From Phaeosaccion multiseriatum (lineage: Eukaryota; Protista; Ochrophyta, other classes), in contig OZ218951.1 of assembly GCA_965112735.1 (NCBI GenBank), forward strand, positions 2,480,001 to 2,544,000: 64,000 nt of DNA, given 5' to 3'. This document shows, one piece after another, positions 11,769 through 62,485 of this stretch; positions within the stretch are counted from its first letter, which is position 1, and each line of letters opens with the position of its first letter. The notes below the pieces were generated by a model. That model was not told the DNA's origin, did not search any database, and saw only the letters and a list, made by a program, of their open reading frames with translations. Position numbers and translations under genes: made by a program.

Positions 11769-12942
11769 CCTCTTCACAAGTTGGTTCTCGAGAGTCGTCG
11801 ACAATCAAGGGGGGACAGGGGGGGTGATCTGGAAACAAAAAATAAAAATATTCCCTGTTCCATTAACGGGGAGCAGTAAGCTGTGCCGCGAAGCTTCCAG
11901 GGCCTCGTGTAGAGAGAGAAGTGAAGCCATGGCCGAGGAGAGCACTAAGCGGCGACGAGGAGCTTCCAGGGCATCTTCTGTGCGGGGGGGGAACAGTGCA
12001 CCCTCTAACGCGGAGGAGCCGCGTGCCAAGGTATTGGCTCTGGAGGTCACGATGCTGAAGATCATGGGCATTGTAGGGGAGGGGCATCATCTTTTCGTCG
12101 CTGGGGTGAGCAAGAACTGGAGGGGGCTGTACGACGGCGCTCATCCAGGGTTGAAAACCTCTCTTCGTCGCAGCTTGTTCGGGTCTGTGGAGTGCCTCAA
12201 CTGGGCCATCAAGCACGGCTGCATAGAGCTGGGTATGGACGTGGGCCTGGAGATTTTTGAAGCTGCAGCGAGGTTTGGGGACGTGAGCGTCTGCCAGACC
12301 CTCCATCACCACGGCTGTCCATGGGACGAGAAAGTGTGTGAAGCTGCTGGCGAGAATGCAAAGCACGGCCTGAGCATTCTCAAGTGGCTCCGCTCCGAAG
12401 ACCTGCCCGACAAGAGACCGTGTCCGTGGAACGAGAATACTTGCTCTGCAGCGGTATATAGAGGGGACGTGGACATGCTCACGTGGCTGCTCTCGGACGA
12501 GGCGAATGCCCCATTTGAAGTCACATCGAACTTGTTGTATTCCGCTGTGAGAGAGGGACGTATAACTATGCTCGAGATACTTCTGGCTCAACCCAGTCTC
12601 AGGACCGACCTGGAGGCGGGAGGCGAAGGCGGCATGTGGCGAGATGGGGCTTTCTTTGCTGCGGTTTTTGGCCGCTTGGAGGTGCTGCGCTGTCTGCATG
12701 CAAACGCTCGTGACCTGTGCGTTTGGGACGGCGTTGTTTGCTACGGTGCCGTCACGAATGCCAAAAGCCTTGAAATGTTGCAGTGGCTGCGATCCGAGAG
12801 CGTCATGTGCCCATGGGACATGTTCTCGTGCCCGGAGGTACTGCTCCACAAGGGGCGATGGGACGGAGGGAGGGATGATAGGTTTGAGGAGATCAAGCAA
12901 TGGGTGCACGCCAATGGCCACCCCTGCGACTGCGAGGACTGA
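11769..12942 (+). repeat. Dispersed duplication of 1709-2883 (promoter plus paralog B)
   Basis: Identity starts at cctcttcacaagttggttctcgag (1709 vs 11769) and ends exactly at the TGA stop (2883 vs 12942). Confidence 0.95.
11929..12942 (+). CDS. Intronless ankyrin-like repeat protein (paralog C), recent duplicate of paralog B
   Basis: Same length (1014 nt) and nearly the same sequence as 1870-2883. Confidence 0.85.
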   Translation: MAEESTKRRRGASRASSVRGGNSAPSNAEEPRAKVLALEVTMLKIMGIVGEGHHLFVAGVSKNWRGLYDGAHPGLKTSLRRSLFGSVECLNWAIKHGCIELGMDVGLEIFEAAARFGDVSVCQTLHHHGCPWDEKVCEAAGENAKHGLSILKWLRSEDLPDKRPCPWNENTCSAAVYRGDVDMLTWLLSDEANAPFEVTSNLLYSAVREGRITMLEILLAQPSLRTDLEAGGEGGMWRDGAFFAAVFGRLEVLRCLHANARDLCVWDGVVCYGAVTNAKSLEMLQWLRSESVMCPWDMFSCPEVLLHKGRWDGGRDDRFEEIKQWVHANGHPCDCED

Positions 12943-32117: not shown

Positions 32118-35100
32118 TCAAGAGCGCGTCAGGAAGTCATCGTACACTTGGAGCATGTCGGGCGTGACCCCGGGGTGGACGCCTCGCAGGGCCGTCTCAA
32201 AGTCGCTCTGCCGCACCTGTTGACATGGGGAGAAGGGGCAGCCACATCGGAGAGTCAGAAGGAGATCCGTTAGAGCATTGCAAGGAAAAGTGACATACAC
32301 ACATACACACACACCATGCATGTGTCTTCGTAACGTTTCGCTATAGCTAAGCGTTTCACGCGTGGATACACGCATACCTCCTGGCAGTGTAAGCCCCTCT
32401 CTCGAAGGGCATACATGGCGGCTTCTCGACACGCGCTCTCGATCTCCGCCCCGCTGAGGCCCTCTGCTCTCTCCGCCAAGAAGGAAAGGTCGACATCCCC
32501 TCCCAGAGGGGTCTGACGGGTGTGAACCTCAAAGATCTTGAGCATCAGTAGCACAGTGCATTATGATACGGAGGAGGAGGAGGAGGAGGAGGAGGAGCAG
32601 AAGGAGGAGGAGGAGCAGAAGGAGGAGGAAGAGGAGGAGGAGGAGGAGGAGGAGGAGGAGGAGGAGGAGGAGGAGGAGGAGGAGCAGAAGGAGGAGGAAG
32701 AGGAGGAGGAGGAGGAGGAGGAGGAGGAGGAGGAGGAGGAGGACGAGGAGGACGAGGAGGACGAGGAGGAGGAGGAGGAGGAGGAGATGAGACGAGAGGA
32801 GAGAAATAGCTGATGAGCTGTCCGAAGAGGGACGGAAGCGTGGTTGGGTTGCGGGGGGGGACCACCCTTTCCCTTCTCCACACGCCTCCCTCTTCCTTTC
32901 CCCTCCCTGCCTCGCCCCAGCCCTACCCTCAACCTTGCATGTCCCCTTCCTCCATCCTCCTTCTTCCCCACCTACCCACCCCTTTCTCACCCTCGCCCTC
33001 ACCCTCACCCTCACCCTCACCTGCCTTCGCCCTTCCTGGTCGGGCAGCGGCACATAAATGAGCTCGTCGAAACGCCCCTTCCTCAGCAGCGCAGAGTCGA
33101 TGGCACCAGGGCGGTTGGTGGCCGCCACCACCGTCACGCCATCCCCCCCCTGCATGGCGTCTACACCATCCATTTCATTCAGAAACGTCGCCAGCACACT
33201 GGATTCTGCTCTACCTCCTCCTCCTCCTCCATCCCCGCCTCTGTTGCTGACGAGGGCGTCGAGCTCATCGAAAAAGAGAATGCAGGGAGACGCCCCTCGA
33301 GCGACGGTGAAGGCCCTGCGTACCGCTGCCTCGGCCTCACCGAGGTAGGGAGAGTACACGTCAGCACCTGTCCACAAGAAGGGGAGGAGGAAGGAGGAGG
33401 GAGATGAGTATTGTGCACGAGGAGCGGGTGAGGAGGAGGGACTTGATCTACGCAAGGGGGGTATGAGAGGGGGATTAGAAAGAGGCGAAGAGGATACAAG
33501 TGCTCTGCCCACAGGGGTGAAGGAGGAAGGAGGAGAGAAAGGACGGGGCGGTGATGGCGACGCATATGGCTCCTCGATCCTCCACGCACCTGATAGAGAC
33601 ACGAAGGATGCCATCGTTGCGTTGGCGACGGCCTTGACGAGGGTGGTCTTGCTGCACCCCGGGGGGCCGAACAGCAGGATGCCGCGCGGGGGCCTGGGGT
33701 TAGGGGTGGAGGGGTGGATGGGTGGGTGGTGGGGGGGGGTAGGAGATGAGGGGTCAGGACGAGGGTCAGGGTCAGATCCAGGGTCACGGTCAGGGTCAGG
33801 GGCAGGGTCAGGGTCAGGGTCAGGGTCAGGGGCAGGGTCAGGGTCAGGGTCAGGGTCAGGGGCAAGGATAAGGGTGAGGGTGAGGGTCAGCGTCTGGAGG
33901 CAGGAGGACATGCAGGTCACGAGTTGAGAGCAACGATCAAGGCCCTCGCAACAAGCCAAAGACACACCTCCTCCCCCCCTGCCCTCCTCCACCCCTCCCT
34001 CCCACACCAATAATGTAACTCTTAAGGTTGATTCCCATAAGGCAATGTACCTCCCTCCCACACGACACACACCTCAAGTTGAAGCGTGCAAAGGCGTCCT
34101 TGTGCAACAGAGGCCACTCAACCGCCCGCTGTAACCGCCCCTTTGCCTCCCTCACCCCGCCAATGTCTGCCCACGTGACCTTCGGCACCTCGAGTCGGAA
34201 ACCTCGCAGAGACGAGGACCCCACCTTCTCCAATGCCTGGCGCAGATGCTGCTCCTCCACCAACAGCTGACGACGGCGTTCGTTGGCCAGAGAGAGAGAC
34301 ACCGAGAAAGAGACAGAGAGAGACAGAGAGACCGACAGGGAGACAGACAGGGAGGAAGAGACAGAGAGAAAGAGGCAGAGAGACACACAGAGAGAGAGAG
34401 AGAAAGAAAGAGAGAGGAAGACAGAGTTAGGGTTGGGGTCCGATTGGGGCTGCTGGGGGGCTGTAGGGGGCGAAAGAGGGGCCACTCATTCCTTCACATG
34501 CACCTTCACATTCAGATTCACTTTCACATTCGCATTCACATTCACATTCGCATACACATACACATACACATACACAGGTCAGTGTTGTGGGGTGAGGGTG
34601 GCGATGGTGCTGCAGCAGCTTGCCGGCCATTCACTGACTTACTTTCACGTTAGCTGTCGTCGCTCCCGCCTCCACGCCTACCCGCCCCTGCGGCCTCTGT
34701 TTTTCTCCGGCCCCCTCCTTCCTCGCCTCCCCTCCCTCCTCGTCGTCACCCTCTCCCTCCCCCCCCCCCTCCTCCTGACGCTGCTGATAGCGCCTCACGG
34801 CCTGGCTGCTGGCCAAGAGCACCGCTTCTCTGCTGAGGGCTGCGAGGTCCGCCCCCACGTACCCCACTGCTGCAGCCGCTATGGCTCCGATCGTCGCCAA
34901 GCCACCCTCGACCTCCACGCTGGGGGGGGGGGTAGGGTAGGGTAGGCACCAATCACGGATTGGAAGTCAACCAGCAGCACAAGTGAGAGAGAGGGAGAGA
35001 CGGAAAGAGACAGGGATAGAGAGAGTAAGAGAAAGGAGAGTGAGAATTAGAGTTTGAGTTAGGGACGAGGTGAAGAGGGTGGGAAGTGAGTAGGAGGAGC

Positions 35101-39241: not shown

Positions 39242-40411
39242 TGCCTCCCAAGCAAGAAGGTCACAGCCCTATGCCATACAAAGCATGTACATGATGACCC
39301 CGGCGTTACTGCCGTCTCTGGTTGTGATTGTGAGTCACTCTCTCTCTCCCCCCCTCCCTTTGTGTGTAGCAGTGTTATGAGCCCCCGAACACTATTCGAT
39401 GATTCCTGCTCCTGCGTGTGTCATGTGCTCCACAAGACAAAGACACTGTTCTCTTTGTCCGGTGTGGTCGCCCCCCCCACCCCTTCTCTCTTTTTTCAGC
39501 GGCTGCTGGTCCTCTCTGGTTGACACTGTGTCACTTGCCCCCTTTCTCATCGATGTTGCTGCATCCCTCTCTGTAATAAATAAAAGCTTTGGGGGTCGGC
39601 ACTACAATCCTCGGTAGTGTGGAACAAGTCAGAGAAGTGAGCCTTGGTTTAGTCCGCGGCGGAGTGGTGGTGCCTAGTCCTACTTCGGCCGTTGCTTCCT
39701 CTTGATCGAGCCATAATTATGGCCACAGGGTACAGCACTCCCACGCAGATGACGAGGAGCCCCAGCCACCAGTGCATGTCCTGTGGCGGACAAGAACGGG
39801 GGGGGGGGGAGGGAAGGTATGTTGTTTTAATGTATGGATCCAGTGCTCAGTTAGACGCAGACGCATTCGCAATAGCAGCAACACAGCAAGGGAGCAGAGT
39901 CTCAGACGGGAGGTTGTGGGTGCTTGTGCTTCTTGCGGAGCGAGAGCAGTGAATGGAGCGTGAAGGAGAGGGGAGAGGAAGGAGGGGGGGGAAGGGGAGG
40001 AAGGATGGAGGTAAACAATGGCTGTTTAGACATTCCATGACCCAGGACACTTGCGCACTCCAAGATACGATACGCGTGGAGAGGAACTGACCTTGTACGA
40101 GGGCGTCAGGTGCAGAACCATGGCAGGATCTGGGACCCCCCCCCCTCTCGCTTCTTTCTGGACCACGCACAGCCCCCAGACTGCACTCCTTCAGAGAGTA
40201 CTTCTGTAGCTACCTGCTGAGCGTCTTTCCCTCTGCCCTTACCACTCGCTCTTTTCCTCCATCCGTGAAGATGGTGGGATCGGATCGGGGATGATAGTCG
40301 TCGCCAAGGCGCGCAGTGGAGACAGAGGTGTGGAAGGAAGGGGCTTCATTTTTCGATTTCCCTCCCAGCCGCCGGGGAGTAGGAGAAAACGGCGGTGTTG
40401 CATCAGCGCGC

Positions 40412-43822: not shown

Positions 43823-44431
43823 TCCCTCAGTCAATCACATCCCAGGAGCGAAGCAGCAGCTGTTCCCCCCCCCCCCCCCCCCCCCAGTCGAGACTTACCA
43901 AGACGGGGAGCCCTTTTTCACTGCCATAAACAAATCTGTGTGTGGTATATTTGAAATCACAACCCCCTGCGATAACGAGCTTGAACGAGCACACAACTTG
44001 GCATAGAGCAGCGCATGCATCAATGAGCAGAGAAGGGAGGGAGCATCATCAGGGGAGGAACGAGAGGCGGAGGGGAGGGGGCGCGACGTCTGTACAAGGC
44101 TGTCTCGCACGACGAGGGAGGAGATGGAGGAGATGACAATCGGGGGGAGGAGACGCGGCTAATCGACGACGATGTACAATTGTAGCGGAGATGGACCCGG
44201 CCAGGAGGGTCATGTTCGGTATGGCCGTCATGGTGGAGCTCAAGTCCGGCTTATCGTGGCCTGGAGTCGTGTGCGATCCTCGCTTCGCTCCTCATCCGGT
44301 CATGGTCACGGCCCAAAAATGCCTTCCTCGAGCACAAGACCTGGTCTTCCTCTTCGGCATCAAGTACCCATTCATTATGGCGCCATGCTGGTGAGCGAGG
44401 TCTGGTAGGGTATCAAGCCATCTATCCATCC
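43823..44431 (+). pseudogene. Truncated 5' duplicate of the PWWP-domain gene at 51411
   Basis: Starts with the same tccctcagtcaatcacatcccaggagcgaagcagc as 51411; encodes MDPARRVMFG...LSWPGVVCDPRFAP...VFLFG; homology stops inside intron 1. Confidence 0.8.
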
Positions 44432-45448
44432 GCAGAGTGTTCCGCTGTACCATGTGCATTTCCTTTGGCAGGCCGCCGAGTTTCCTCATTCCACACTCCC
44501 AAAGGTCACAAACGTGCTTGTTTCCTTCAGCGTCCCATCTCCCGTGCAACCATAAAACCCGTCCTGTCTGCCTCTTGAGGATCCAAGTGGGCGTCAGTCA
44601 TGTGTAGCGCATCTCCAAACTCCAAGTCGTGCACTTCGAAGGCGGCGGCAGTTGCAGCAGTAGGAGCAGCGGAGGGGTCGTGGCAGGCTAAGCACACAAG
44701 TCTCGAGGACGGCAAGGAGGGGCAAATACTGTTGCTGTCCACGTCGTTGCTCGTTTCCATGTCCAGCCCCCCGAAGTTAGAGTCGCCACCACGCACCGCC
44801 ACCTCCTCGTCAGCCTGGGTACTTCCTCCTTCGCTCCGCTCTCTTTCTGTCTCTTCCATGTCGCCCTCCTCTTCTTCTCCGCCGCCATCTTCCCCCTCCT
44901 GTCTCCCTGGTACCTCTCCCTTCCTTTGCTGCCGATGGGGAGGAAGGAGCAGAAGGATGCACACACAATGATACAATTGTCCCTAGTGGAGAACCTCTGC
45001 CGTAGACAGCACCGTTGCATCGCGCGCCAAGCTACAAAAGCGAGTGTCCCCCGCAGAGTCGTGCTCATTTCATTTGCCTTATCCTTTTTCCTCCCCCTCC
45101 CAATCAGCCGTACTGCCCATCCCCCCTCTTCCGACGGCGCCACCGCTGGTGTTGCTGCGGCTGCTCCTTGTTCTTGTCATTATCTTCCTCCTCGTGCTCC
45201 TTCGCTCCATCGGCCAGCAGCATTCGACACTCGACACTATCGCCAAACAGAGCGAAGAGAGCGAATTGCGAATTGGATGGTGCATATGTTGGTCCTCCGC
45301 CCCAGCTCACAGCTGGCTGAGAAGGAGGTGGGTCTTTCTCTCCTTCCCCCTCTCCCCCTCCCTTCCTCCCTCCCTCCTTTCCCGCTCCCTCCCTCCCCTC
45401 GCCCCTTCCCTCCCTTCCCGAGAGAGCAGTAAGAGCTTAGGACAGAAA

Positions 45449-47884
45449 ATGTTGATGATGAGAGCGGTGTCATTGAGGGGGGTGACCAGAACGTGCTACT
45501 CCTCTTGCATTGGCAGGAATAGAAGAGGACCGCTGCTTAAACGGCGTACCGACTCTACTCTCCATCAGCAGAAGCAGCTGCCGCAGCAATGGTCCTGCTA
45601 CTCTACTGGGGGAAGTGACAAGTCGAGACAGATACGGCTTATGAGGGAGATCCAGGATCTGGGGAGGAGAAAGGATTGGAAGAAGGTTGCACCTACTCTG
45701 GAGCGCGCACGGCGAGAGGGCCTCAAGCCCAACAAGTACTGTTTGAATGCTGCGATTACCGCGATTGGGAAGAGTGGGCGGTGGAAGGGCGCTTTGAGAC
45801 TTCTGGACGAGATGAAAGCAGAAGGACTCTCTCCCGACGTAATCAGCTACAGCTCCGCCATTGACGCATGCGCCAGAGCCAGCCAGCACATGGAAGCATT
45901 GGTTTTGCTGAGGGAGATGAAGGCAGAAGGACTCGCTCCCAATGAAATCAGCTACAACTCCACCATGAACGCATGCGCCAGAGCCAGCCAGCACATGGAA
46001 GCATTGGTTTTGCTGAGGGAGATGAAGGCAGAAGGACTCGCTCCCAATGAAATCAGCTACAACTCCACCATGAACGCATGCGCCAAGGCCGGCCAACACG
46101 TGGAGGCATTGGTTTTGCTGAGGGAGATGAAGGCAGAAGGACTCGCTCCGGATGAAATCAGCTACAGCTCCACCATTAACGCATGCGCCAGAGCCAGCCA
46201 GCACATGGAAGCATTGGTTTTGCTGAGGGAGATGAAGGCAGAAGGACTCGCTCCGGATGAAATCAGCTACAACTCCACCATGAACGCATGCGCCAAGGCC
46301 GGCCAACACGTGGAGGCATTGGTTTTGCTGAGGGAGATGAAGGCAGAAGGACTCGCTCCGGATGAAATCAGCTACAACTCCACCATTAACGCATGCGCCA
46401 GGGCCAGCCAACACGTGGAGGCATTGGTTTTGCTGAGGGAGATGAAGGCAGAAGGACTCGCTCCGGATGAAATCAGCTACAACTCCACCATTAACGCATG
46501 CGCCAGGGCCAGCCAGCACATGGAAGCATTGGTTTTGCTGAGGGAGATGAAGGCAGAAGGACTCGCTCTGAATGAAATCAGCTACAACTCCACCATTAAC
46601 GCATGCGCCAGGGCCAGCCAACACGTTGAGGCATTGGTTTTGCTGAGGGAGATGAAGGCGGAAGGACTCACTCCCAATGAAATCAGCTACAGCTCCACCA
46701 TTAACGCATGCGCCAGGGCCAGCCAACACGTGGAGGCATTGGTTTTGCTGAGGGAGATGAAGGCGGAAGAACTCACTCCCAATGAAATCAGCTACAACTC
46801 CACCATTAACGCATGCGCCAAGGCCAGCCAACACGTTGAGGCATTGGTTTTACTGAGGGAGATGAAGGCGGAAGGACTCGCTCCGGATGAAATCAGCTAC
46901 AACTCCACCATTAACGCATGCGCCAAGGCCAGCCAACACGTTGATGCATTGGTTTTACTGAGGGAGATGAAGGCGGAAGGACTCGCTCCGGATGAAATCA
47001 GCTACAGTGCCACCATTAACGCATGCGCCAGGGCCAGCCAGCACATGGAAGCATTGGTCTTACTGAGGGAGATGAAGGCGGAAGAACTCGCTCCCAATGA
47101 AATCAGCTACAACTCCACCATTAACGCATGCGCCAGGGCCAGCCAACACGTTGAGGCATTGGTTTTGCTGAGGGAGATGAAGGCGGAAGGACTCGCTCCA
47201 GATGAAATCAGCTACAGTGCCACCATTAACGCATGCGCCAGGGCCAGCCAACACGTTGATGCATTGGTTTTGCTGAGGGAGATGAAGGCAGAAGGACTCG
47301 CTCCCAATGAAATCAGCTACAACTCCACCATTAACGCATGCGCCAAGGCCAGCCAATACGTGGAGGCATTGGTTTTACTGAGGGAGACGAAAGCAGAAGG
47401 ACTCTCTCCCGACGTAATCAGCTACAGCTCCACCATTAACGCATGCGCCAGGGCCAGCCAACACGTGGAGGCATTGGTTTTGCTGAGGGAGATGAAGGCG
47501 GAAGGACTCGCTCCGGATGTAATCAGCTACAGCGCCGTTATTGATGGTCTGCAGGAGGGTGGAGAGGAGGAGGCTGCTGACGAGCTGTACGAAGAGGCCG
47601 TATCGCTGGGGATTTTGAATCACTGGAAGAAAGGTGGGCAGGAGATGGATTTGCACGACTTCACCAGGGGAACGAGCAAGGCAGCGCTTCGTCACGTGCT
47701 CTCAGAGGCGAAGCCGGGGGCTGAGGTCAAAGTCATCACAGGCCGAGGCCGAGGCAGTGAGGGCGGCGTCAGCGTTCTCAAGCCCGCGGTGCTGGCCTAC
47801 TTGCAGGAAAGAGCAGGAGTCGAAGTACGGGAAGACGAACGTAACCCGGGGATGGTGGTGATGCGAGTCACCGGTGCGCGATGA
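45449..47884 (+). CDS. Intronless P-class PPR protein with C-terminal SMR domain, probably mitochondrion-targeted
   Basis: 811 aa from ATG 45449; Arg/Ser-rich, acid-poor leader (MLMMRAVSLRGVTRTCYS); about 18 35-aa PPR motifs; SMR motifs MDLHDFT, VITGRGRGS, NPGMVV from about 47645. Confidence 0.93.
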   Translation: MLMMRAVSLRGVTRTCYSSCIGRNRRGPLLKRRTDSTLHQQKQLPQQWSCYSTGGSDKSRQIRLMREIQDLGRRKDWKKVAPTLERARREGLKPNKYCLNAAITAIGKSGRWKGALRLLDEMKAEGLSPDVISYSSAIDACARASQHMEALVLLREMKAEGLAPNEISYNSTMNACARASQHMEALVLLREMKAEGLAPNEISYNSTMNACAKAGQHVEALVLLREMKAEGLAPDEISYSSTINACARASQHMEALVLLREMKAEGLAPDEISYNSTMNACAKAGQHVEALVLLREMKAEGLAPDEISYNSTINACARASQHVEALVLLREMKAEGLAPDEISYNSTINACARASQHMEALVLLREMKAEGLALNEISYNSTINACARASQHVEALVLLREMKAEGLTPNEISYSSTINACARASQHVEALVLLREMKAEELTPNEISYNSTINACAKASQHVEALVLLREMKAEGLAPDEISYNSTINACAKASQHVDALVLLREMKAEGLAPDEISYSATINACARASQHMEALVLLREMKAEELAPNEISYNSTINACARASQHVEALVLLREMKAEGLAPDEISYSATINACARASQHVDALVLLREMKAEGLAPNEISYNSTINACAKASQYVEALVLLRETKAEGLSPDVISYSSTINACARASQHVEALVLLREMKAEGLAPDVISYSAVIDGLQEGGEEEAADELYEEAVSLGILNHWKKGGQEMDLHDFTRGTSKAALRHVLSEAKPGAEVKVITGRGRGSEGGVSVLKPAVLAYLQERAGVEVREDERNPGMVVMRVTGAR
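45839..47518 (+). repeat. 16 tandem near-identical 105-bp coding repeats (PPR motifs)
   Basis: Exact 105-bp period with no indels (gaag(g/a)actc at 45821, 45926 ... 47501). Confidence 0.97.
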
Positions 47885-48649: not shown

Positions 48650-51410
48650 TGCCTGGGTGGGTGGGTGGGGGTGTGGGTACGTGGGTACGTGGGTGGGTGG
48701 GTGCGTGGGTGGGTGGGTGGGTGCGTGCGTGGGTGCTTGTGTGGTGGGGGGTGTGGGGGTGGGTGAGTGAGTGAGTGTGTTGGTGGGTGGATGCGTGCGT
48801 GGGTGGGTGAGTGAGTGTGTAGGTAGGTAGGTGCGTGGGGGTGTGGGGGTGGGTGATTGCGTGGGTGCATGTGTGGGTGGGTGAGTGAATAAGTGAGGGA
48901 GTGAGATAGTGCGTGCAGCCAGTAGGTCTGTGTGATAGGTTCAGGGGGGGGGGGGGGAGTGTGGCAGCCAGGACAGCGCTCCGGCGGGTGATAGACGGGT
49001 GGGGTGCAAACGAACCGTCTTGCCTGTAAACAGAGCAGCTGTCCATTTTGGGAAGGGCGAGAAGAAGCGGAACACTCGCAGACCACGCGAGTAACAAATG
49101 AAGACAAGCAAGTTTTTGTACACCAGCAGCAGCACAGCAAGCAAGAGGCTTGGGTGCCCATGGAGAGGCGTGGGGATGGGTGTGTGATGAGTGGGTAGAT
49201 GGGTGGGTGCGTGCGTGCGTGGGTGGGTGGTTGCGTGCGTGGGTGGGTAGTTGTGCGTGTGGCTGTGGGTGTGTGATGGGGGGTGTGGGGTGTAGGTGCA
49301 TGGGCAGGACAATATCGACATTGGTGTCGAGGAGGTCTACTTCGGTCTAATTCGGGATGGTGGGCGGGAGTGTATCGGGTCAGTGACAAGGCCGTGTGTT
49401 AGAAGTCGAGCTTTTGCTAAGCTCATACCTACCCTCTGAATTCAGACACGTGTATGGGAGGCAAAAGGGATAAGAGCAAGGGCATAGAGGACAGTGCGAC
49501 AAGGACAAGGACATCATCAAGGGAGTGGTATTGGACATTAGCAACAACGTCAATTAATTACATATCAACTCTTATGCACATCGTAGACAACTTGGAGTGA
49601 GCGGTAGGCCACTACGTGGCTACTGAGAGCGGTTCCGGGAAGGGTCGTCTCTGCCCTTGGCTCGGAGACTAACAGGGGGGGGGTGGATGGGTGGGTGGGA
49701 GTGTGGGTACATGGGTGGGTGGGTGCGTGGGTGGGTGTGTGGGTTGGTGGGTGGGTTCGTGCGTGCGTGGGTGCGCGTGTGGTGGGGGGTGTGGGGGTGG
49801 GTGAGTGAGTGAGTGTGTGGGTGAGTGAGTGAGTGAGTGGGTAGGTGGGTGGGTGGGGTGGATGAGTGCGTGGGTGCGTGTGTGGTTGGGGGTGTGGGGG
49901 TGGGTGAGTGCGTGGGTGGGTAGGTGGGTGGGTGCGTGAGTGAGTGCGTGCAGTAGGTCTGTGTGATAGCTTCAGGGGGGAGGTAGGGAGGGTGTGGCAG
50001 CCAGGACAGCGCTCCGGCGGGTGATAGACGGGTGGGGTGCAAACGAACCGTCTTGCCTGGAAACAGAGCGGCTGTCCATTTTGGGAAGGGCGAGAAGAAG
50101 CGGAACACGCGCAGACCACGCGAGTAGCAAATGAAGACAAGCAAGTTTTTACACACCAGCAGCAGCACAGCAAGCAAGAGGCTTGGGTGCCCATGGAGAG
50201 GAGTGGGGGTGGGTGTGTGAGTGAGTGGGGGTGTGGGTAGGTGGGTGGGGGTGTGGGTACGTGGGTGGGTGGGTGCGTGGGTGGGTGGGTAGGTGCGTGC
50301 GTGGGTGGGTGATGGGGGGTGTGGGGTGTAGGTGCATGGGCAGGACATCGACATTGGTATCGAGGAGGTCTATTTCGGTCTAGTTCGGAATGGTGGGCGG
50401 GAGGGTATCGGGTCAGTGACAAGGCCGCGTAGGAGGCAAAAGAGATCAAAGCAAGGGCATACAGCACACTGTGGCAAGTGTATAGACAAGGACATCATCA
50501 AGGGAGTGGTGTTGGACACTAGCGACGTCTATTAATTACATACATTTCCACTTGCTCAACTCTTACGCACATCATAGAGAACTTGGAGGGAGCGGTAGGC
50601 CACTAAGTGGCTACTGGGAGCGGTTCCGGGAAGGGTCGTCTCTGCCCTTGGCTCGGAGGCTGAGAGGGAGTGGGTGGGTGGGTGGGGGTGTGGGTACGTG
50701 AGTGGGTACGTGAGTGGGTACGTGCGTGGGTGTGTGGGTGCGTGCGTGGGTGGATGAATGCGTGCGTGGGTGGGTTCGTGCGTGCGTGGGTGCGTGGGTG
50801 GTGCGGGGTGTGGGGGTGGGTGAGTGAGTGAGTGAGTGAGTGAGTGTGTGGGTAGGTGGGTGGGGGTGTGGGGGGTGGGTGGGTTAGTGAGTGGGTAGGT
50901 GGGTGGGTGGGGTGGATGAGTGCGTGGCTGCGTGTGTGGTTGGGGGTGTGAGGGTGGGTGCGTGCGTGGGTGCGTGTGTGGGTGGGTGCGTGAGTGAGTG
51001 CGTGTAGTAGGTCTGTGTGATCGCTTCGCTCAGGGGGGGGGGGGAGGGTGTGGCAGCCAGGACAGCGCTCCAGCGGGTGGTAGACGGGTGGGGTGCAACA
51101 AGCGGCCCGACTTGCTTGTAAAGAGAGCGGCTGTCCATTTTGGGGAAGCGGAACACGCGCAGACCACGCGAGTAGCAAATGAAGACAAGAAGTATAGCAA
51201 GCAAGAGGCTCGGGTGCCCATGGAGAGAGTGAGGGCGAGGGGGGGTGTGCGTGACTCTCGTCGAATGGGTGGTGTAAAGAAACAACAGTGTTTGGTTCGT
51301 CAAGGGGAATCACGCGGTGCACGTCGCATCTCTTTCAAAAGGGTGGTGTTGAGAAACACCAGTGTTGTTGTTTTGTGTTGACGCACTTGACGCTCACAAA
51401 GAAAGCCGGG
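48650..51410. repeat. Three diverged tandem units of about 1 kb related to the histone H4 downstream flank
   Basis: Shared blocks: gtaggtctgtgtgat...gtgtggcagccaggacagcgctcc (about 48922, 49953, 51007; also about 55407 and 60967), gggtgcccatggagag, gacaaggacatcatcaagggagtggt, gagcggttccgggaagggtcgtctctgcccttggctcggag; separated by GT-rich low-complexity tracts. Confidence 0.9.
51345..51360 (-). promoter_or_regulatory. Orphan histone 3' stem-loop
   Basis: Minus strand reads GGTGTT-TCTC-AACACC-ACCC, with flanks matching the H4 3' UTR but no histone CDS upstream. Confidence 0.8.
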
Positions 51411-51610
51411 TCCCTCAGTCAATCACATCCCAGGAGCGAAGCAGCAGCAGCTAAGTATACATGGGGGGGAATTGATACCTCGCTCCAGGCGGCGGGAGCC
51501 CTTTTTCACTGCCATAAATAAATCTGTGTGTGTGGTATTATTTGAAATCACAACCCCTTGCGATCACGAGCTTGAACGAGCACACAAGTTGGCATAGAGC
51601 AGCGCATACA

Positions 51611-54386
51611 ATGAACAGACGGGAGGGAGCACTATCAGGGGAGGCACGAGAGGCGGAGGGGGCGCGACGTATGAGCAAGGCTGTCGCGCACGACGAGGGA
51701 GGAGATGGAGGACATGACAATCGGGGGGAGGAAACGCGGCTAATCGACGACGATGTAGCGGAGATGGACCCAGCCAGGAGGGCCATGTTCGGTATGACCG
51801 TCATGATGGAGCTCAAGCCCGGCGTCTGGTGGGCTGGAGTCGTGTGCGATCCTCGCTTCGCTCCTCATCCGGTCATGGTCACGGCCCAAAAATGCCTCCC
51901 CCGAGCACAAGACCTGGTCTTCCTCTTCGGCGTCAAGTACCCATTTGTTATGGCGCCGTGCTGGTGAGCGAGGTTTAGTAGGGCATCAAGCAATCTGTCC
52001 ATCCCATCCAGCCTAACGAACAAGCAACGCGTCCCAATCAGGTCCATCAAGCCCTTCGATGGCGATGTGGATGTTCTTCCCGCGATGCTCGAGGGCAGCG
52101 ATGCCCAGGGCTGGATGGAAGGCATGAAGCAAGCCAAGAGGCATGCCTCCCTACCTGAGCACCAGAGGATGCGGTGGATAAGAAAGGGCGGCAGGAGGAG
52201 AGGGGGAATTGGAGGAGAGGTGCGTTCCCTGCTGCCCGCCGCAAATTCTCTGCTTTGTAAGTACCTCACTCTCCACTCTCTATCCCCGCCCCGCAGTCAG
52301 CACACAATCGCATGCACCAATTCTACCGGAACCTCGACCAAGACCGGTCGGCGGCGCCGCTGGTGAGACCGAAGGCACAGCGTCCCGAACATGGCGCCCC
52401 TGTGATGCCGCTCGTGACGGCGCTCGACATGGCTGAGGAGGAGGAGGTTGGCGAGGTCCGTAATGCAGCGGCGCACCTGTATGTTAGACAAAGCAGCAGG
52501 GGCAAGAGCAAGAGAGAGACCGGCCAAAAGCATGGTGAGGAGAATGGGGGGTTGCTTGGGGCGGCGGAGCAGCGGTTGGTGTTTCATTCTTCTTCTTCTT
52601 CTTCTTCTTTCGCTTGCTTCTGGCGGTGAGATGCATACTCACATGGCTACCACCCCCATTGCCGTCGATTGCGTACATACCGCAGCAGCAACCACCCGAG
52701 GGGTTCTTCGTCTATGTGGAGCTGTACGCCGATGACCAAGGAAGGGAAGGCCCTTGCGTCCCTTCCTGGGCCGAGTGGCCGGAGCTCGAGAGCGACAGCA
52801 GCGAGGAGGCCGCCGGCACCGCTGCCCCCTCGCCACCCGGCATCATCAGTGCCAAAAGCAGCGGCGACGAGGGCGACAGCGCGCGAGCACCTCCACCCCC
52901 CCGAGCGAAGCCAATCCAGCACGAGAAGGAGCAGCGGCAGTAGCCACAGCGACCCCACCGGCGACAGCAGCATTGACAGCACCACCACCCGCACCAGCCG
53001 CTCCAGCAGCAGCGACACCCTGTGAGTCGGGCAGCGGCCTCGGAGCAGCTCCGTCACCAGAGGAAAGCGGCACGGGCAGCATCGGAGCAGCGACAGCTCC
53101 ATCCGCAGCACCTTGCGACTCCTCCAGCGGGGCGGCTGCAGCGTCAGGAGACCAGCACTACGGTGGCGACAGCAGCGACGACAGCGACGACGACAGCGGC
53201 GACGACAAGGCGCCCTCGGGAGCAGGGGGCGGGCCTTCGATGCGCCGCACCTCCTGGGCTGCATGCGAGAGGAAGCGCAAGCCAGCAGGGGAGGCGAGAG
53301 CCCCCGCCACTGCCGCCCCGCCAAGGGCGCTGCGGAGGTTCAGCAGCTTTTCGAAGGGCGGCAGGTCCTGGCCAACCCCCGCCCTGGCCCGGGGAGCCAA
53401 CTGCCGCGTAGTCGCCCTGATGAGCAGACACTGCACCCCCTCTTGGATCGCTTCTGCGCGCTAAAGGTAGGTTTGTGACACTTGCTTGTGGGCAGCTGAC
53501 TCACTACACACACACACAGCCACAGCCACACGGCCGGTCGCCTCCTTTGTGTCCCCACCAAATACTAATACAGAATCATGTTCCTCTGCCTTGCTTGCTT
53601 GTTCAGGCTCTTAAGGATCCCAACGCCATGGCCACTCTGCTGCCCATAGTGTCCATGAACACTCTCCTCCACTGGTGCGACGACCTGTCGCCGGGGAAGT
53701 TGGACATGCTGTGGAATTTGCGCCGCCCGGACGAAGGCAAGGCCTTGGCCCCCGAGCAAGTCGTAGGACTCGGTTGCGAGGACGTTCCTCAGGATACGAG
53801 CGTCGTCTATTTCGCCTGGCCATCCGTGGAGCAGGGGAATCGGGACAAGACTCCGGAGAAGGTTCTCGCACTGCTGAGGGAAAATGTGCCTGGGATGGAC
53901 AAGTATGACACCGTGGGCGAGGCGGTGCTCAAGCTCATCGACTCCTTCGAGCCAGAGAATGGAGGACGCATGGCGGGAGGAGGCAAGGTGGGCACCACCA
54001 GGCACCATGGCGGCCGTTTTGGAGTGTACAACACGAGCGGCCCGCTGCAGCACCTGCTCCTACTCGCCAAGAAGCTGGGCCTCGCCGACTACTTCTCCCT
54101 ATATTACGTCGTCCTCTTCCACGCTGTCGAGCTGTACTCCCCCTACCGCGACACGTCCTCGGACGAAGAAGCCACCAAGCGCAAGGACAACCAAATGGTC
54201 TACCTCGAGGCCATCGAGACCACCTGCGCCGCCATCATCGGCCCCCAGTGGCTCCCCGCCTTCGCGCGCTTCGGCCGCTTCAGTGGAGGGGGATCATGCA
54301 ACAACAACGACACCCCCCCCTTCACCATCAAGGCTCAACACCTGAGCCGCCGCAGCAGCAGCAGCAGCAGCAGCGGCGGTGGTGGT

Positions 54387-54419
<33 letters not shown>

Positions 54420-54887
54420 GGTGGTGGTAGCAGCAGCAGCAGCAGCAGCAGCGGCGGTGGTGGTAGCAGCAGCAGCAGCAGCGGCGGTGGCGGTAGCAGC
54501 AGCAGCACTGGGGTGACGAAGAAGAGGAAGCTGTGCAGCGTAGCAGGCTGCGACAAACGAGCGAGAAAAGGCGGCCTTTGCGACAAGCACGGGGGCCAGA
54601 GGAAGAGGAAGCTGTGCAACCACGGCGGAGGAGGCCGCTGCCCCAACCAGGTCGTCAAGGATGGCGTGTGTGTGCAGCATGGCGCCACTGTAAAGCGGTG
54701 CAGCGTGGACCACTGCGACAGTGCTTCCAAGAAGGACGGTCTGTGCATTCGCCACGGGGCCCCTGTGAAGCGGTGCAGCGTACAAGACTGCGACAAGCTC
54801 GCCCAGCAGGGCGGAGTGTGCCGCAGGCATAGCAGCAGCAGAGAGGAGGGACCTCCGCCAAAGAAGCAGAAGCGCGCTCCTGGCTAG
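51611..54887 (+). pseudogene. Multi-exon gene: PWWP-like domain, low-complexity linker, putative GIY-YIG-like domain, WRKY19-like C-x4-C...C-x2-HG zinc-finger repeats; apparent frameshifts
   Basis: PWWP-like: VMMELKPGVWWAGVV...VFLFG...IKPF. Last exon (acceptor about 53606) has SVVYFA...GKVGTT-x4-RFGVY...YLEAIE...GGSCN, then four fingers (e.g. CSVAGCDKRARKGGLCDKHGG). The plausible frame shifts near the C-run at about 52896 and again near 53230-53320. Joining all exons into one gene is inferred. Confidence 0.6.
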
Positions 54888-56084
54888 GCTGAGAGGGGCA
54901 TGGTAGGCAGTCTTGGTGACGGGCTCGGGGTAGCAAGTTGTGAGTGAGGGAGGTAGTGAGTGGGTTAGTAGTAGGGCATGGGTGCGTGGATGCGTGGGTG
55001 GGTGGATGCGTAAGCGCTGGTGGGTACGTGGGTGTGTGTGTGTGTGTGTGTGGGGGTGGTGTGCGTGGATGGGTGGGTGCGTGCGTGGGTGGGCGAATGC
55101 GTGGGTGTGTGGGTGGGTGTGTGGGTGGGTGTGGGGGTGAGTGAGTGAGTGAGTGGGTGAGTGAGTGGGTGGGTGTGTGGGTGGGTGTGGGGGTGGGTGA
55201 GTGAGTGAGTGGGTAGGTGGGTGGGTGCGTGCGTGGGTGGGCGAATGCGTGGGTGTGTGGGTGGGGGTGTGGGTGTATAAGGGCGGGTGCGTTTGTGGGT
55301 GGGTGAGGGTGTGGGTGCGTGGTGGGTGCGTAGGTGGGTGGGTGGGTGCGTGGGTGCGTGCGTGAGTGCGTGAGGGAGTGAGGGAGGGAGTGAGATAGTG
55401 CGTGCAGTAGGTCTGTGTGATCGCTTGAGGGAGGGTGTGGCAGCCAGGACAGCGCTCCGGCGGGTAATACATGTAGGCGGGTGGGGTACAAAAGAACTGG
55501 AACTGTCTTGCCTGTAAACAGGCCATGTGTAAAATGAACATTGCTGGCCCCATTGAAGCCTTACTTGGACGCTATTCCGCCCCGGGATTGGTGCTCCTTC
55601 TCCAAGGACCTTAGCCCTATACAGGAGTGAAGTATAGGTTTAATTAAGGCACCCAATACACAGCGTCTTACTTGGGTTTGCTTAAATCTAAATGTGGCGC
55701 TCGGATCCGAACTTCACTCCCACGTCGTACCAGAGGAAGAACTGCAGCCCCCCCAGTGCATCCCAAGCAGCAATACGGGCGGGACGGATACAGCAGCCAG
55801 CCAGGCAAGATATACCTGCCGGAGGAGCCCTCGGGGCTGACGAAGAGGAAGGGGAGGACTTGAAACTGGGGAGGTAAGTAAGCGATGAAGTATGAAGGGA
55901 CGAAGGGGTGGGGTGGGAGGGGGTTGGCATGGGTAAGGGACGAATACCTGTAGCGAGAGGGCTACAAGTCATGGAGCTATGTCCTTCTCTTGGCTACCAT
56001 TCCTCCTCCTGTTTGCCCCCGCACTCGCCTGCTTCCCATTGTCTGAGACTGTACACTAAAGTAAAGGCATCTCTTCAAAAGGGT

Positions 56085-56100
56085 GGTGTTAAGAAACACC
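56085..56100 (-). promoter_or_regulatory. Histone 3' stem-loop of the truncated H4 copy
   Basis: Minus strand GGTGTT-TCTT-AACACC-ACCC. Confidence 0.85.
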
Positions 56101-56169
56101 AGTGTTGGTTGGGTTGACGCCACAAAGCCGGGTGGTGAGGGCTAAAAAAGGCTAAAGGAAACAAAGCGT

Positions 56170-57048
<879 letters not shown>

Positions 57049-59039: not shown

Positions 59040-60087
<1,048 letters not shown>

Positions 60088-60243
60088 GGTGCGTAGGTGG
60101 GTGTCTGTGTGGGTGTGGGGGTGGGTGAGTGATTGAGTCGGTAGGTGGGTGGGTGGGGGTGTGGGTGTATAAGCGCGGGTGTGTGTGCGTGGGTGTGTGG
60201 GTGGGTGAGTGTGGGTGTGGGTGCGTGGTGGGTGGGTGTGGGG

Positions 60244-60425
60244 GTGAGTGAGTGAGTGAGTGAGTGAGTGAGTGAGTGAGTGAGTGAGTGAGTGAGTGAG
60301 TGAGTGAGTGAGTGAGTGAGTGAGTGAGTGAGTGAGTGAGTGAGTGAGTGAGTGAGTGAGTGAGTGAGTGAGTGAGTGAGTGAGTGAGTGAGTGAGTGAG
60401 TGAGTGAGTGAGTGAGTGAGTGAGT
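60244..60425. repeat. (GAGT)n microsatellite
   Basis: Direct inspection. Confidence 0.95.
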
Positions 60426-61644
60426 GGGTGAGTGAGTGAGTGGGTGAGTGAGTGAGTGGGTAGGTGGGTGGGTGTGGGGGTGAGAGTGGGTAGGTGCGTG
60501 GTTGGGTGGATGCGTAAGCGCTGGTGGGTACGTGGGTGGGTGTGTGGGTGGGTATGGGGGTGGGTGAGTGGGTGGGTGGGTAGGTGGGTTGGGGTTTGGC
60601 TACGTAAGTTTGTGGCTGGGTGGGTTTGGGGGTGGGTACGTGGGTGGTGTGCGTGTGTGGGTGATTGCGTGCGTGGGTGGGCGAATGCGTGGGTGGGTGT
60701 GGGGGTGGGTGAGTGAGTGAGTGAGTGAGTGAGTGAGTGAGTGAGTGAGTGAGTGAGTGAGTGAGTGAGTGGGCGAGTGAGTGAGTGAGTGGGTAGGTGG
60801 GTGGGTGGGGGTGTGGGTGTATAAGGGCGGGTGCGTTTGTGGGTGGGTGTGGGGGTGGGTGGGTGAGGGTGTGGGTGCGTGGTGGGTGCGTAGGTGGGTG
60901 GGTGGGTGCGTGGGTGCGTGCGTGAGTGCGTGAGGGAGTGAGGGAGGGAGTGAGATAGTGCGTGCAGTAGGTCTGTGTGATCGCTTGAGGGAGGGTGTGG
61001 CAGCCAGGACAGCGCTCCGGCGGGTAATACATGTAGGCGGGTGGGGTACAAAAGAACTGGAACTGTCTTGCCTGTAAACAGGCCATGTGTAAAATGAACA
61101 TTGCTGGCCCCATTGAAGCCTTACTTGGACGCTATTCCGCCCCGGGATTGGTGCTCCTTCTCCAAGGACCTTAGCCCTATACAGGAGTGAAGTATAGGTT
61201 TAATTAAGGCACCCAATACACAGCGTCTTACTTGGGTTTGCTTAAATCTAAATGTGGCGCTCGGATCCGAACTTCACTCCCACGTCGTACCAGAGGAAGA
61301 ACTGCAGCCCCCCCAGTGCATCCCAAGCAGCAATACGGGCGGGACGGATACAGCAGCCAGCCAGGCAAGATATACCTGCCGGAGGAGCCCTCGGGGCTGA
61401 CGAAGAGGAAGGGGAGGACTTGAAACTGGGGAGGTAAGTAAGCGATGAACTATGAAGGGACGAAGGGGTGGGGTGGGAGGGGGTTGGCATGGGTAAGGGA
61501 CGAATACCTGTAGCGAGAGGGCTACAAGTCATGGAGCTATGTCCTTCTCTTGGCTACCATTCCTCCTCCTGTTTGCCCCCGCACTCGCCTGCTTCCCATT
61601 GTCTGAGACTGTACACTAAAGTAAAGGCATCTCTTCAAAAGGGT

Positions 61645-61660
61645 GGTGTTAAGAAACACC
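61645..61660 (-). promoter_or_regulatory. Histone H4 mRNA 3' stem-loop
   Basis: 6-bp stem, 4-nt loop: GGTGTT-TCTT-AACACC followed by ACCC, about 70 nt after the stop. Confidence 0.88.
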
Positions 61661-61729
61661 AGTGTTGGTTGGGTTGACGCCACAAAGCCGGGTGGTGAGG
61701 GCTAAAAAAGGCTAAAGGAAACAAAGCGT

Positions 61730-62485
<756 letters not shown>

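Follow-up and report, generated by a model that had tools for sequence, protein, structure and literature searches.

In a 64,000-nucleotide stretch of the genome of Phaeosaccion multiseriatum (GenBank assembly GCA_965112735.1, contig OZ218951.1, positions 2,480,001 to 2,544,000 of the forward strand; referred to below as the window, to which all positions refer), an open reading frame (ORF) at 45449–47884 on the forward strand was analyzed. We interpret it as a nuclear gene, intact and coding for a P-class pentatricopeptide repeat (PPR) protein of the organelle type that carries an SMR domain at its C-terminus, belonging to the heterokont/dinoflagellate group of such proteins and carrying a young, recombining array of PPR motifs. 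The protein is presumed to be an RNA binder and, possibly, an RNA cutter; the probability of this interpretation was estimated at about 0.7. The PPR-SMR architecture is known already from plants, heterokonts and dinoflagellates, and the unusual property of the Phaeosaccion protein is the uniformity of its array.

The PPR-SMR gene and its reading frame

The ORF is uninterrupted, comprises 811 codons and ends with TGA at 47884. Its ATG at 45449 is located in the context AAAATGT, with A at position −3. The gene is intact, nuclear and eukaryotic and consists of a single continuous ORF, in agreement with the initial annotation of this DNA, made without database searches, in which the gene was described as intronless. 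The ORF list and the matches of the product with the Pfam PPR families and with Smr identify 45449–47884 as a complete single-exon coding sequence for 811 aa plus the TGA codon. Just 5' of the ATG, a CT-rich low-complexity tract was detected on the same strand by Tandem Repeats Finder (45338–45419); it is likely the 5' leader or a promoter-proximal element.

The first 60 residues (45449–45628) have a presequence-like composition, with 12 R/K, 2 D/E and 13 S/T, and contain no hydrophobic signal-peptide core (the maximum Kyte-Doolittle value was 1.04 over 11 aa). Judging by this composition, the segment may be a mitochondrial-type targeting peptide. Since the N-terminus is basic, rich in S/T and devoid of a signal-peptide core, the mitochondrion seems to be a more probable destination than the plastid in a host with a secondary plastid.

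The PPR tract and its repeat array

According to the Pfam analysis of the full-length protein, 17 stretches match PPR_2 (E = 3.6e-165), and the PPR family is matched with E = 1.9e-117. Tandem Repeats Finder detected an array at 45809–47531 with a period of 105 bp, 16.4 copies, 92% matches, 0% indels and a score of 2809. In the PPR register, where motif k begins at 45839+105(k−1), the array corresponds to sixteen near-identical motifs of 35 aa (45839–47518, forward strand), as had been noticed in the initial annotation. The mean identity of unit pairs is 92.2% at the DNA level (range 84.8–100%) and 87.4% at the protein level for the 16 units. Nineteen of the 35 positions are occupied by invariant residues and the other 16 positions vary, the unit consensus following the pattern E-I-S-Y-[N/S]-...-P-[D/N].

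The motifs flanking the array are degenerate, with just 8–16 of their 35 residues matching the array consensus. A weak degenerate PPR-like helix pair with M at position 5 and N at position 35 is located ahead of the array (45629–45733, forward strand; 8/35 identical to the array consensus), followed by the degenerate motif 0 with the code ND (45734–45838, forward strand; 16/35 identical, 54% DNA identity). On the other side, the degenerate terminal PPR-like motif 17 (47519–47623, forward strand) has S at position 5, and its second helix serves as the linker before the SMR domain, LY..A...G....HW, which is conserved 5' of this domain in relatives. Counting the degenerate ends, the PPR tract comprises 18–19 motifs. 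The array is an internal expansion within an otherwise normal PPR-SMR protein. By its sequence, the protein can be assigned to the P class: it has 35-aa P motifs only, no E or DYW domain was found in the Pfam scan, and no P-L-S triplets occur within the strict 105-bp period.

The pairs of residues at positions 5 and 35, read from motif 0 to unit 16, are ND, SN, NN, ND, SD, ND, ND, NN, NN, SN, ND, ND, SN, ND, SN, ND and SD, the last sixteen of them belonging to the array. This string is identical to that given in the initial annotation. All four pairs ND, NN, SN and SD are present, and non-canonical pairs are absent from the 17 motifs. In the plant PPR code, ND corresponds to U, NN to C/U, SN to A and SD to G, and the earlier translation of the string into the target 5'-UAYUGUUYYAUUAUAUG-3' is correct by this code.

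An antisense ORF of 454 aa overlapping the array (45470–46834, reverse strand) was rejected as a gene, since Pfam returned nothing for it but a hit below the threshold in which no stretch was matched. This ORF stays open solely owing to the absence of stop codons from the repeat unit in the reverse frame concerned.

The C-terminal SMR domain

The linker helix and the SMR domain together form a C-terminal tail of 101 aa (47579–47881, forward strand). The isolated 101-residue tail scored 28.2 bits against Pfam Smr (cut-off 25.7) and matched the solved SMR domain of human N4BP2 with E = 7.9e-5. An alignment-based model of the tail had a predicted local distance difference test (pLDDT) value of 92, and its top matches in Foldseek were 2d9i, 2vkc, MutS2, 3fau, YdaL and pTAC2; in the best of them, N4BP2, MutS2 and YdaL are matched at their SMR domains and pTAC2 at its SMR end. 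The Pfam score, the N4BP2 sequence match and the model show that the tail is a genuine SMR domain, and the earlier description of the product as a PPR protein with an SMR domain is borne out. A single-sequence model of the last motifs and the tail was discarded as too poor (pLDDT 65).

The family alignment, constructed from 39 of the tail's relatives, 30 of which match Pfam Smr on their own, reveals an LDXH-type SMR motif, MDLH (47645–47656, forward strand), and the sequence TGRGRGS (47738–47758, forward strand), which holds an intact TGXG motif (TGRG, 47738–47749). D24 and G55 are invariant in these relatives, and H26 and G57 are nearly so, H26 being found in at least 90% of them. In SOT1, RNA cleavage depends on TGXG, and DNA cleavage on the D and H of LDXH (PMC6662315).

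The SMR domain may, alternatively, be a non-nuclease docking or structural module of an ordinary PPR-SMR protein, like pTAC2/PAP2 in the plastid RNA polymerase, or be ribosome-associated as in the MutS2 type, in which case the PPR tract would act as an RNA stabilizer or adaptor. pTAC2/PAP2 chains are indeed present among both the sequence and the fold matches, the H of the G-x-H-S motif is missing from the tail, and among plant PPR-SMR proteins nuclease activity has been demonstrated only for SOT1 (PMC6662315). However, the tail has retained both D and H in the first motif as well as the full TGRG, unlike pTAC2, which carries VDVH and SVRG at the SMR motif sites (table in PMC6662315), and this alternative is regarded as unlikely.

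Relatives of the protein and the uniformity of its motifs

The closest full-length relatives, with identities of 39–43% or less, were found in Hematodinium, Polarella, Symbiodinium and brown algae, and the full-length protein search yielded nothing above 43% identity. Plant matches, including GUN1, were 27–30% identical and ranked below the dinoflagellate and brown-alga ones. For the tail, an exhaustive HMMER pass over 1.84 billion representatives returned only 77 relatives. The best of them was a Hematodinium PPR-SMR protein (39%), other named relatives were from Chrysophaeum (a pelagophyte) and Chrysoparadoxa, and the remainder were marine metatranscriptome fragments. An orthologue of SOT1, GUN1, pTAC2 or SVR7 was ruled out, the best matches and the nearest SMR tails being non-plant. 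In the PDB, the artificial consensus PPRs gave the best sequence matches (5i9g, E = 4e-89), and maize PPR10 and pTAC2/PAP2 came next. In the closest relative, encoded by a Hematodinium transcript (P0001, 998 aa), the complete PPR-plus-SMR module is present twice within the same polypeptide, the whole architecture being tandemly duplicated internally.

PPR-SMR fusions were previously described in heterokonts (Liu et al. 2013, PMC3858433) and, according to a review (PMC12787238), in dinoflagellates (Safonov and Berdieva 2025). As stated in the review (PMC12787238), SACEK-type PPRs of dinoflagellate/heterokont lineages have S-A-C-E-K at motif positions 9–13 in consecutive motifs. In all 16 units of the Phaeosaccion array these positions are occupied by N-A-C-A-R/K, that is, A10, C11 and the basic residue 13 are as in SACEK, and S9 and E12 are not. 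Judging by the sequence, the motif pattern ...P-N-E-I-S-Y-N-..-I-N-A-C-A-R/K appears to be a variant of the SACEK-type motif.

Self-similarity, taken as the best 175-residue window at a shift of one to three motifs, was determined for the query and its 108 best relatives. It was 0.93 for the Phaeosaccion protein versus 0.81 for a protein of Polarella glacialis (P0036) and less than 0.6 for all the other relatives. The Polarella protein (590 aa; PPR plus a pseudouridine synthase domain) contains eight motifs with 71% identity, in which positions 5 and 35 are the second and third most variable, and is a weaker natural precedent for a uniform array with variable positions 5 and 35.

Same-scaffold paralogues, which the initial annotation suggested looking for, were detected neither in the window nor in the protein databases and JGI metagenomes. 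The full-length search of 5.8 billion proteins found no protein with the same scaffold. With a 210-aa query of six units, used for short fragments, four candidates shared words and none scored; the scan of JGI metagenomes gave no same-scaffold protein and one distant relative (34% identity, locus L001). No further copy was detected in the 64-kb window by tblastn, for which the N-terminus, the SMR tail and a stretch of three array units served as queries. In addition, an exact look-up of the 811-aa product in a public gene index returned no record. A literature search, incomplete in its coverage, found neither a natural PPR array of such uniformity nor a description of PPR repeat shuffling.

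Variation and recombination among the units

Among the 16 units, amino acid diversity was highest at positions 35 (0.53) and 5 (0.50), followed by positions 13 (R/K, 0.46), 18 (M/V, 0.46), 33 (0.34) and 8 (0.32). The chance of the pre-defined positions 5 and 35 ranking first and second of 35 is 1/595, and the chance of both being among the five commonly polymorphic positions is 10/595 = 0.017. The enrichment of variation at positions 5 and 35, on which the initial annotation was built, is real but modest. The toggling of these positions had been compared there with that in transcription activator-like (TAL) effectors. The comparison goes too far: positions 35 and 5 rank first and second, but positions 13 and 18 are nearly equal to them, and the diversity of the code codons is about that of synonymous sites (see below). 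The rest of the variation had been described as mostly conservative; non-conservative changes are G/E at 31, E/V at 1, P/L at 34, M/T at 27 and H/Y at 17.

The ratio of nonsynonymous to synonymous differences (pN/pS) over all unit pairs was 0.34, which indicates that the scaffold is under purifying selection and that the ORF is a real coding sequence. The value of pN was 0.045 at the 33 non-code codons and 0.19 at the two code codons, and the array-wide pS was 0.16. Since pN at the code codons is close to the array-wide pS, positions 5 and 35 look unconstrained rather than positively selected, it being understood that a single array cannot tell relaxed constraint from diversifying selection.

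N35 adjoins CCC at codon 34 in six of seven units, and D35 adjoins CCG in seven of nine. As the D/N state is tied to this silent variant, the states appear to have spread via copied unit types and not by repeated toggling. Both S5 units with the AGT codon have A at position 6, and codons 16–19 form two linked blocks. The four-gamete test fails for 48 of the 105 informative site pairs among the 16 units, which indicates that the units are recombinant mosaics; the code sites take part in 7 and 9 incompatibilities and the silent sites in 9–10, so that homoplasy is no higher at the code sites. Recent duplication of single units and unit pairs is indicated by the identity of units 3 and 5, by the single-nucleotide difference between units 10 and 11 and by the resemblance of the pair of units 2 and 3 to the pair of units 4 and 5. 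Neighbouring units were not significantly more alike than distant ones (permutation P = 0.15). Repeat shuffling, postulated in the initial annotation, is thus a real process, which moves whole unit types; a change of specificity by shuffling is beyond the present data.

The earlier proposal went further and saw in the gene a naturally reprogrammable, RNA-guided-like nuclease, in which the diversity of positions 5 and 35 would be maintained by selection on a homogenized scaffold and shuffling would rewrite the specificity, the targets being, for example, selfish ORFs of organelles, introns or RNA viruses. The two most variable positions, the presence of all four canonical code pairs and of no others, the recombining mosaic of units, the extreme outlier position of the scaffold in uniformity and the intact SMR motifs are in line with such a function. 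At the same time, code-position diversity is merely at the synonymous level, positions 13 and 18 vary almost equally, the D/N state is linked to the neighbouring silent variant, and the code sites exceed the silent ones in homoplasy in no case. Moreover, neither the window nor the protein database nor the metagenomes yielded a paralogue or allele with another code string, and no link to a selfish element or virus was seen. With this balance of evidence, the proposal is considered quite improbable.

Another possibility is that the array is an assembly artefact, its length or unit order being wrong (collapsed, expanded or chimeric) and the code string not real. Tandem 105-bp units with 92% identity are hard to assemble, two of the units (3 and 5) are identical, and the protein is on record nowhere else; but the 105-bp period is perfect, with 0% indels and a frame open over 2.4 kb, the variants distinguish 15 of the 16 units, and a 1-kb pure (GACA)n tract was resolved in the window. 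The resolution of long pure tracts implies a long-read assembly, and an artefact of this kind is considered very unlikely. Finally, it is scarcely credible that the gene is a former PPR-SMR gene turned into a decaying or neutrally drifting coding minisatellite, with the array expanded without function: close orthologues of this orphan scaffold are lacking and the region is repeat-rich, but pN/pS among the units is 0.34 with a non-code pN of 0.045, the frame is open in both the non-repetitive N-terminus and the SMR tail, frameshifts are absent and the family-invariant residues have been retained.

Comparison with known repeat proteins

To our knowledge, no natural PPRs other than the PPR-SMR proteins have a nuclease-type domain of their own. 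Among them, SOT1 has reportedly been proposed as a programmable RNA cutter. The Phaeosaccion protein resembles the plant PPR-SMR proteins (SOT1/PPR53, GUN1, SVR7, pTAC2 and PPR-SMR1) in the P-class tract followed by a C-terminal SMR domain and in the putatively organelle-type N-terminus, and it shares the LDXH-type motif and the TGXG motif with SOT1 and GUN1. However, the identity with plant proteins is ~25–30% and comes from the PPR part, their motifs are degenerate, whereas 16 motifs are 87% identical here, and the nearest SMR tails are those of Hematodinium, heterokonts and marine metatranscriptomes. The SOT1 model, in which the PPR tract provides specificity and the SMR domain cuts RNA (PMC6662315), was used as a working analogy.

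The best matches are with dinoflagellate and heterokont PPR-SMR proteins and SACEK PPRs, which share the pattern '...PNEISYN..I.AC..' and the linker plus SMR domain with the Phaeosaccion protein and contain runs of consecutive, very similar motifs. They differ in having SACEK instead of NACAR/K and in uniformity, which reaches 0.81 in the Polarella protein versus 0.93 here. Designer PPRs (dPPR and cPPR; PDB 5i9g, 5i9d, 5i9f, 5orq and 6een) are similar in that their repeats, built on one scaffold, vary chiefly at positions 5 and 35 and contain canonical pairs only. In contrast to these artificial proteins, the scaffold here is natural and ~40% identical to the designer unit (estimated by eye from the printed alignment), 14 further positions are variable and an SMR domain is present. 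It is tempting to see in the gene a natural counterpart of designer PPR nucleases, in which concerted evolution would keep the scaffold uniform, selection would preserve differing pairs, and unequal crossing-over would alter the code string in length and order, thereby retargeting the SMR endonuclease to new organellar or foreign RNAs over short evolutionary times; we consider this unlikely.

TAL effectors consist of tandem near-identical repeats of ~34–35 aa with two specificity residues each, and recombination takes place between their repeats. The Phaeosaccion array is like them in all three respects, but only by analogy: the fold is unrelated and the target of TAL effectors is DNA. The variation of TAL effector repeats is nearly confined to the specificity residues, whereas 16 of 35 positions vary here, with positions 13 and 18 at 0.46 and code diversity being approximately neutral. 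For the plant RFL PPR genes, diversifying selection at the code positions and recombination have been proposed in connection with selfish mitochondrial ORFs. These are likewise PPRs with proposed recombination-driven evolution, but they form clusters of paralogues and have no SMR domain, whereas no paralogue is present in the 64-kb window analyzed here.

Proposed function and origin of the array

According to the preferred interpretation, the presequence-like N-terminus would probably direct the protein to an organelle, most likely the mitochondrion. There, the superhelix formed by the 18–19 PPR motifs would bind ~17 nt of single-stranded, U/A-rich RNA, with one base per motif, the target predicted from the PPR code being the 17-mer given above. 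The first 10–11 motifs probably hold most of the specificity, by analogy with consensus-scaffold designer PPRs: for consensus tracts longer than ~11 repeats, no gain in affinity was observed and mismatches were tolerated, mainly at the 3' end (PMC5861457). In view of this tolerance, the predicted 17-mer should not be taken as a strict site. A search of the 64-kb window for it found one site with three mismatches, at 39820, which was equalled in 6 of 100 shuffles; this site is meaningless, and nuclear DNA is the wrong place for the target. The SMR domain, with both SOT1 nuclease motifs, could cut RNA near the bound site, if it acts like that of SOT1.

As for the origin of the tract, the 16 internal motifs appear to be a young tandem array that expanded as units and pairs of units were duplicated. 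The similarity of the units would be maintained by gene conversion or unequal recombination, and the degenerate cap motifs at both ends would have stayed outside this homogenization. The scaffold seems to be under purifying selection, and the base-specifying positions seem to vary at an approximately neutral rate, their states being carried with whole unit types. The gene is a member of a known family in an unusual and probably transient evolutionary state.

Several points weigh against the interpretation of the gene as a functional organelle-type PPR-SMR gene with this array and target. In the full-length scan, the Smr score is 23.8 bits, which is under the cut-off of 25.7, and G stands in place of the H found in the usual G-x-H-S, several relatives being likewise without H. 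An in-frame hydrophobic stretch, itself without a start codon, is located 5' of the ATG; such a start-less stretch may indicate an extra 5' exon and hence another targeting signal. The copy number of the array was taken from one assembly, and the PPR code was derived from plants and designer proteins and not from this lineage.

The uniform scaffold with four canonical pairs offers a ready test of the plant PPR code in PPRs of the heterokont/alveolate type and, as a natural consensus scaffold from another lineage, is of interest for protein engineering. The array also illustrates clearly how RNA binders of the helical-repeat type can expand as their units duplicate and recombine. Should strains differ in the code string, the gene would represent a case of binding specificity evolving via repeat shuffling.

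Genomic surroundings of the gene

The window has a G+C content of 52–65% (mean about 58%), is rich in microsatellites and contains ankyrin and WRKY19-zinc-finger ORFs. The initial annotation placed the gene in a rearranged region, and local duplications do flank it. A 525-bp direct repeat with 89% identity (43906–44431 and 51494–52004) brackets the PPR-SMR gene together with the repeats downstream of it. A long terminal repeat element is not an obvious source of the two copies and was rejected, as no gag/pol-like ORF is located between them; they may represent either a dispersed repeat or the margin of a segmental duplication. The downstream repeats (48654–51193) are three tandem copies of a (TGGG)n-rich unit of ~1.03 kb with 77–86% identity, and the long minus-strand ORFs in this region are of low complexity (T-H-P-P-type), with no Pfam match.

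Further from the gene, a 1.17-kb direct duplication with 97% identity (1709–2883 and 11769–12942) contains ankyrin-repeat ORFs. An inverted third ankyrin copy, about 75% identical, was found at 604–1508, and the copies seem to represent a local family of ankyrin genes, small in size. Another direct duplication, of 1.45 kb with 94% identity (54980–56429 and 60558–61989), adjoins long microsatellites, and a near-pure (GACA)262 tract with 98% matches (59040–60088) is followed by an 845-bp tract of the (GGTG)n type (60088–60932). The ORF at 53475–54884 on the forward strand, preceded by GCA/GGT-rich trinucleotide repeats, shows three matches with WRKY19-type zinc fingers (PF24906, E = 3.2e-19). 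In addition, an AAA ATPase ORF with a long (GGA)n-encoded tract is located at 32532–34070 on the reverse strand; it is matched best by a protein from Discosporangium, a brown alga (61%, over 28% of the query length).

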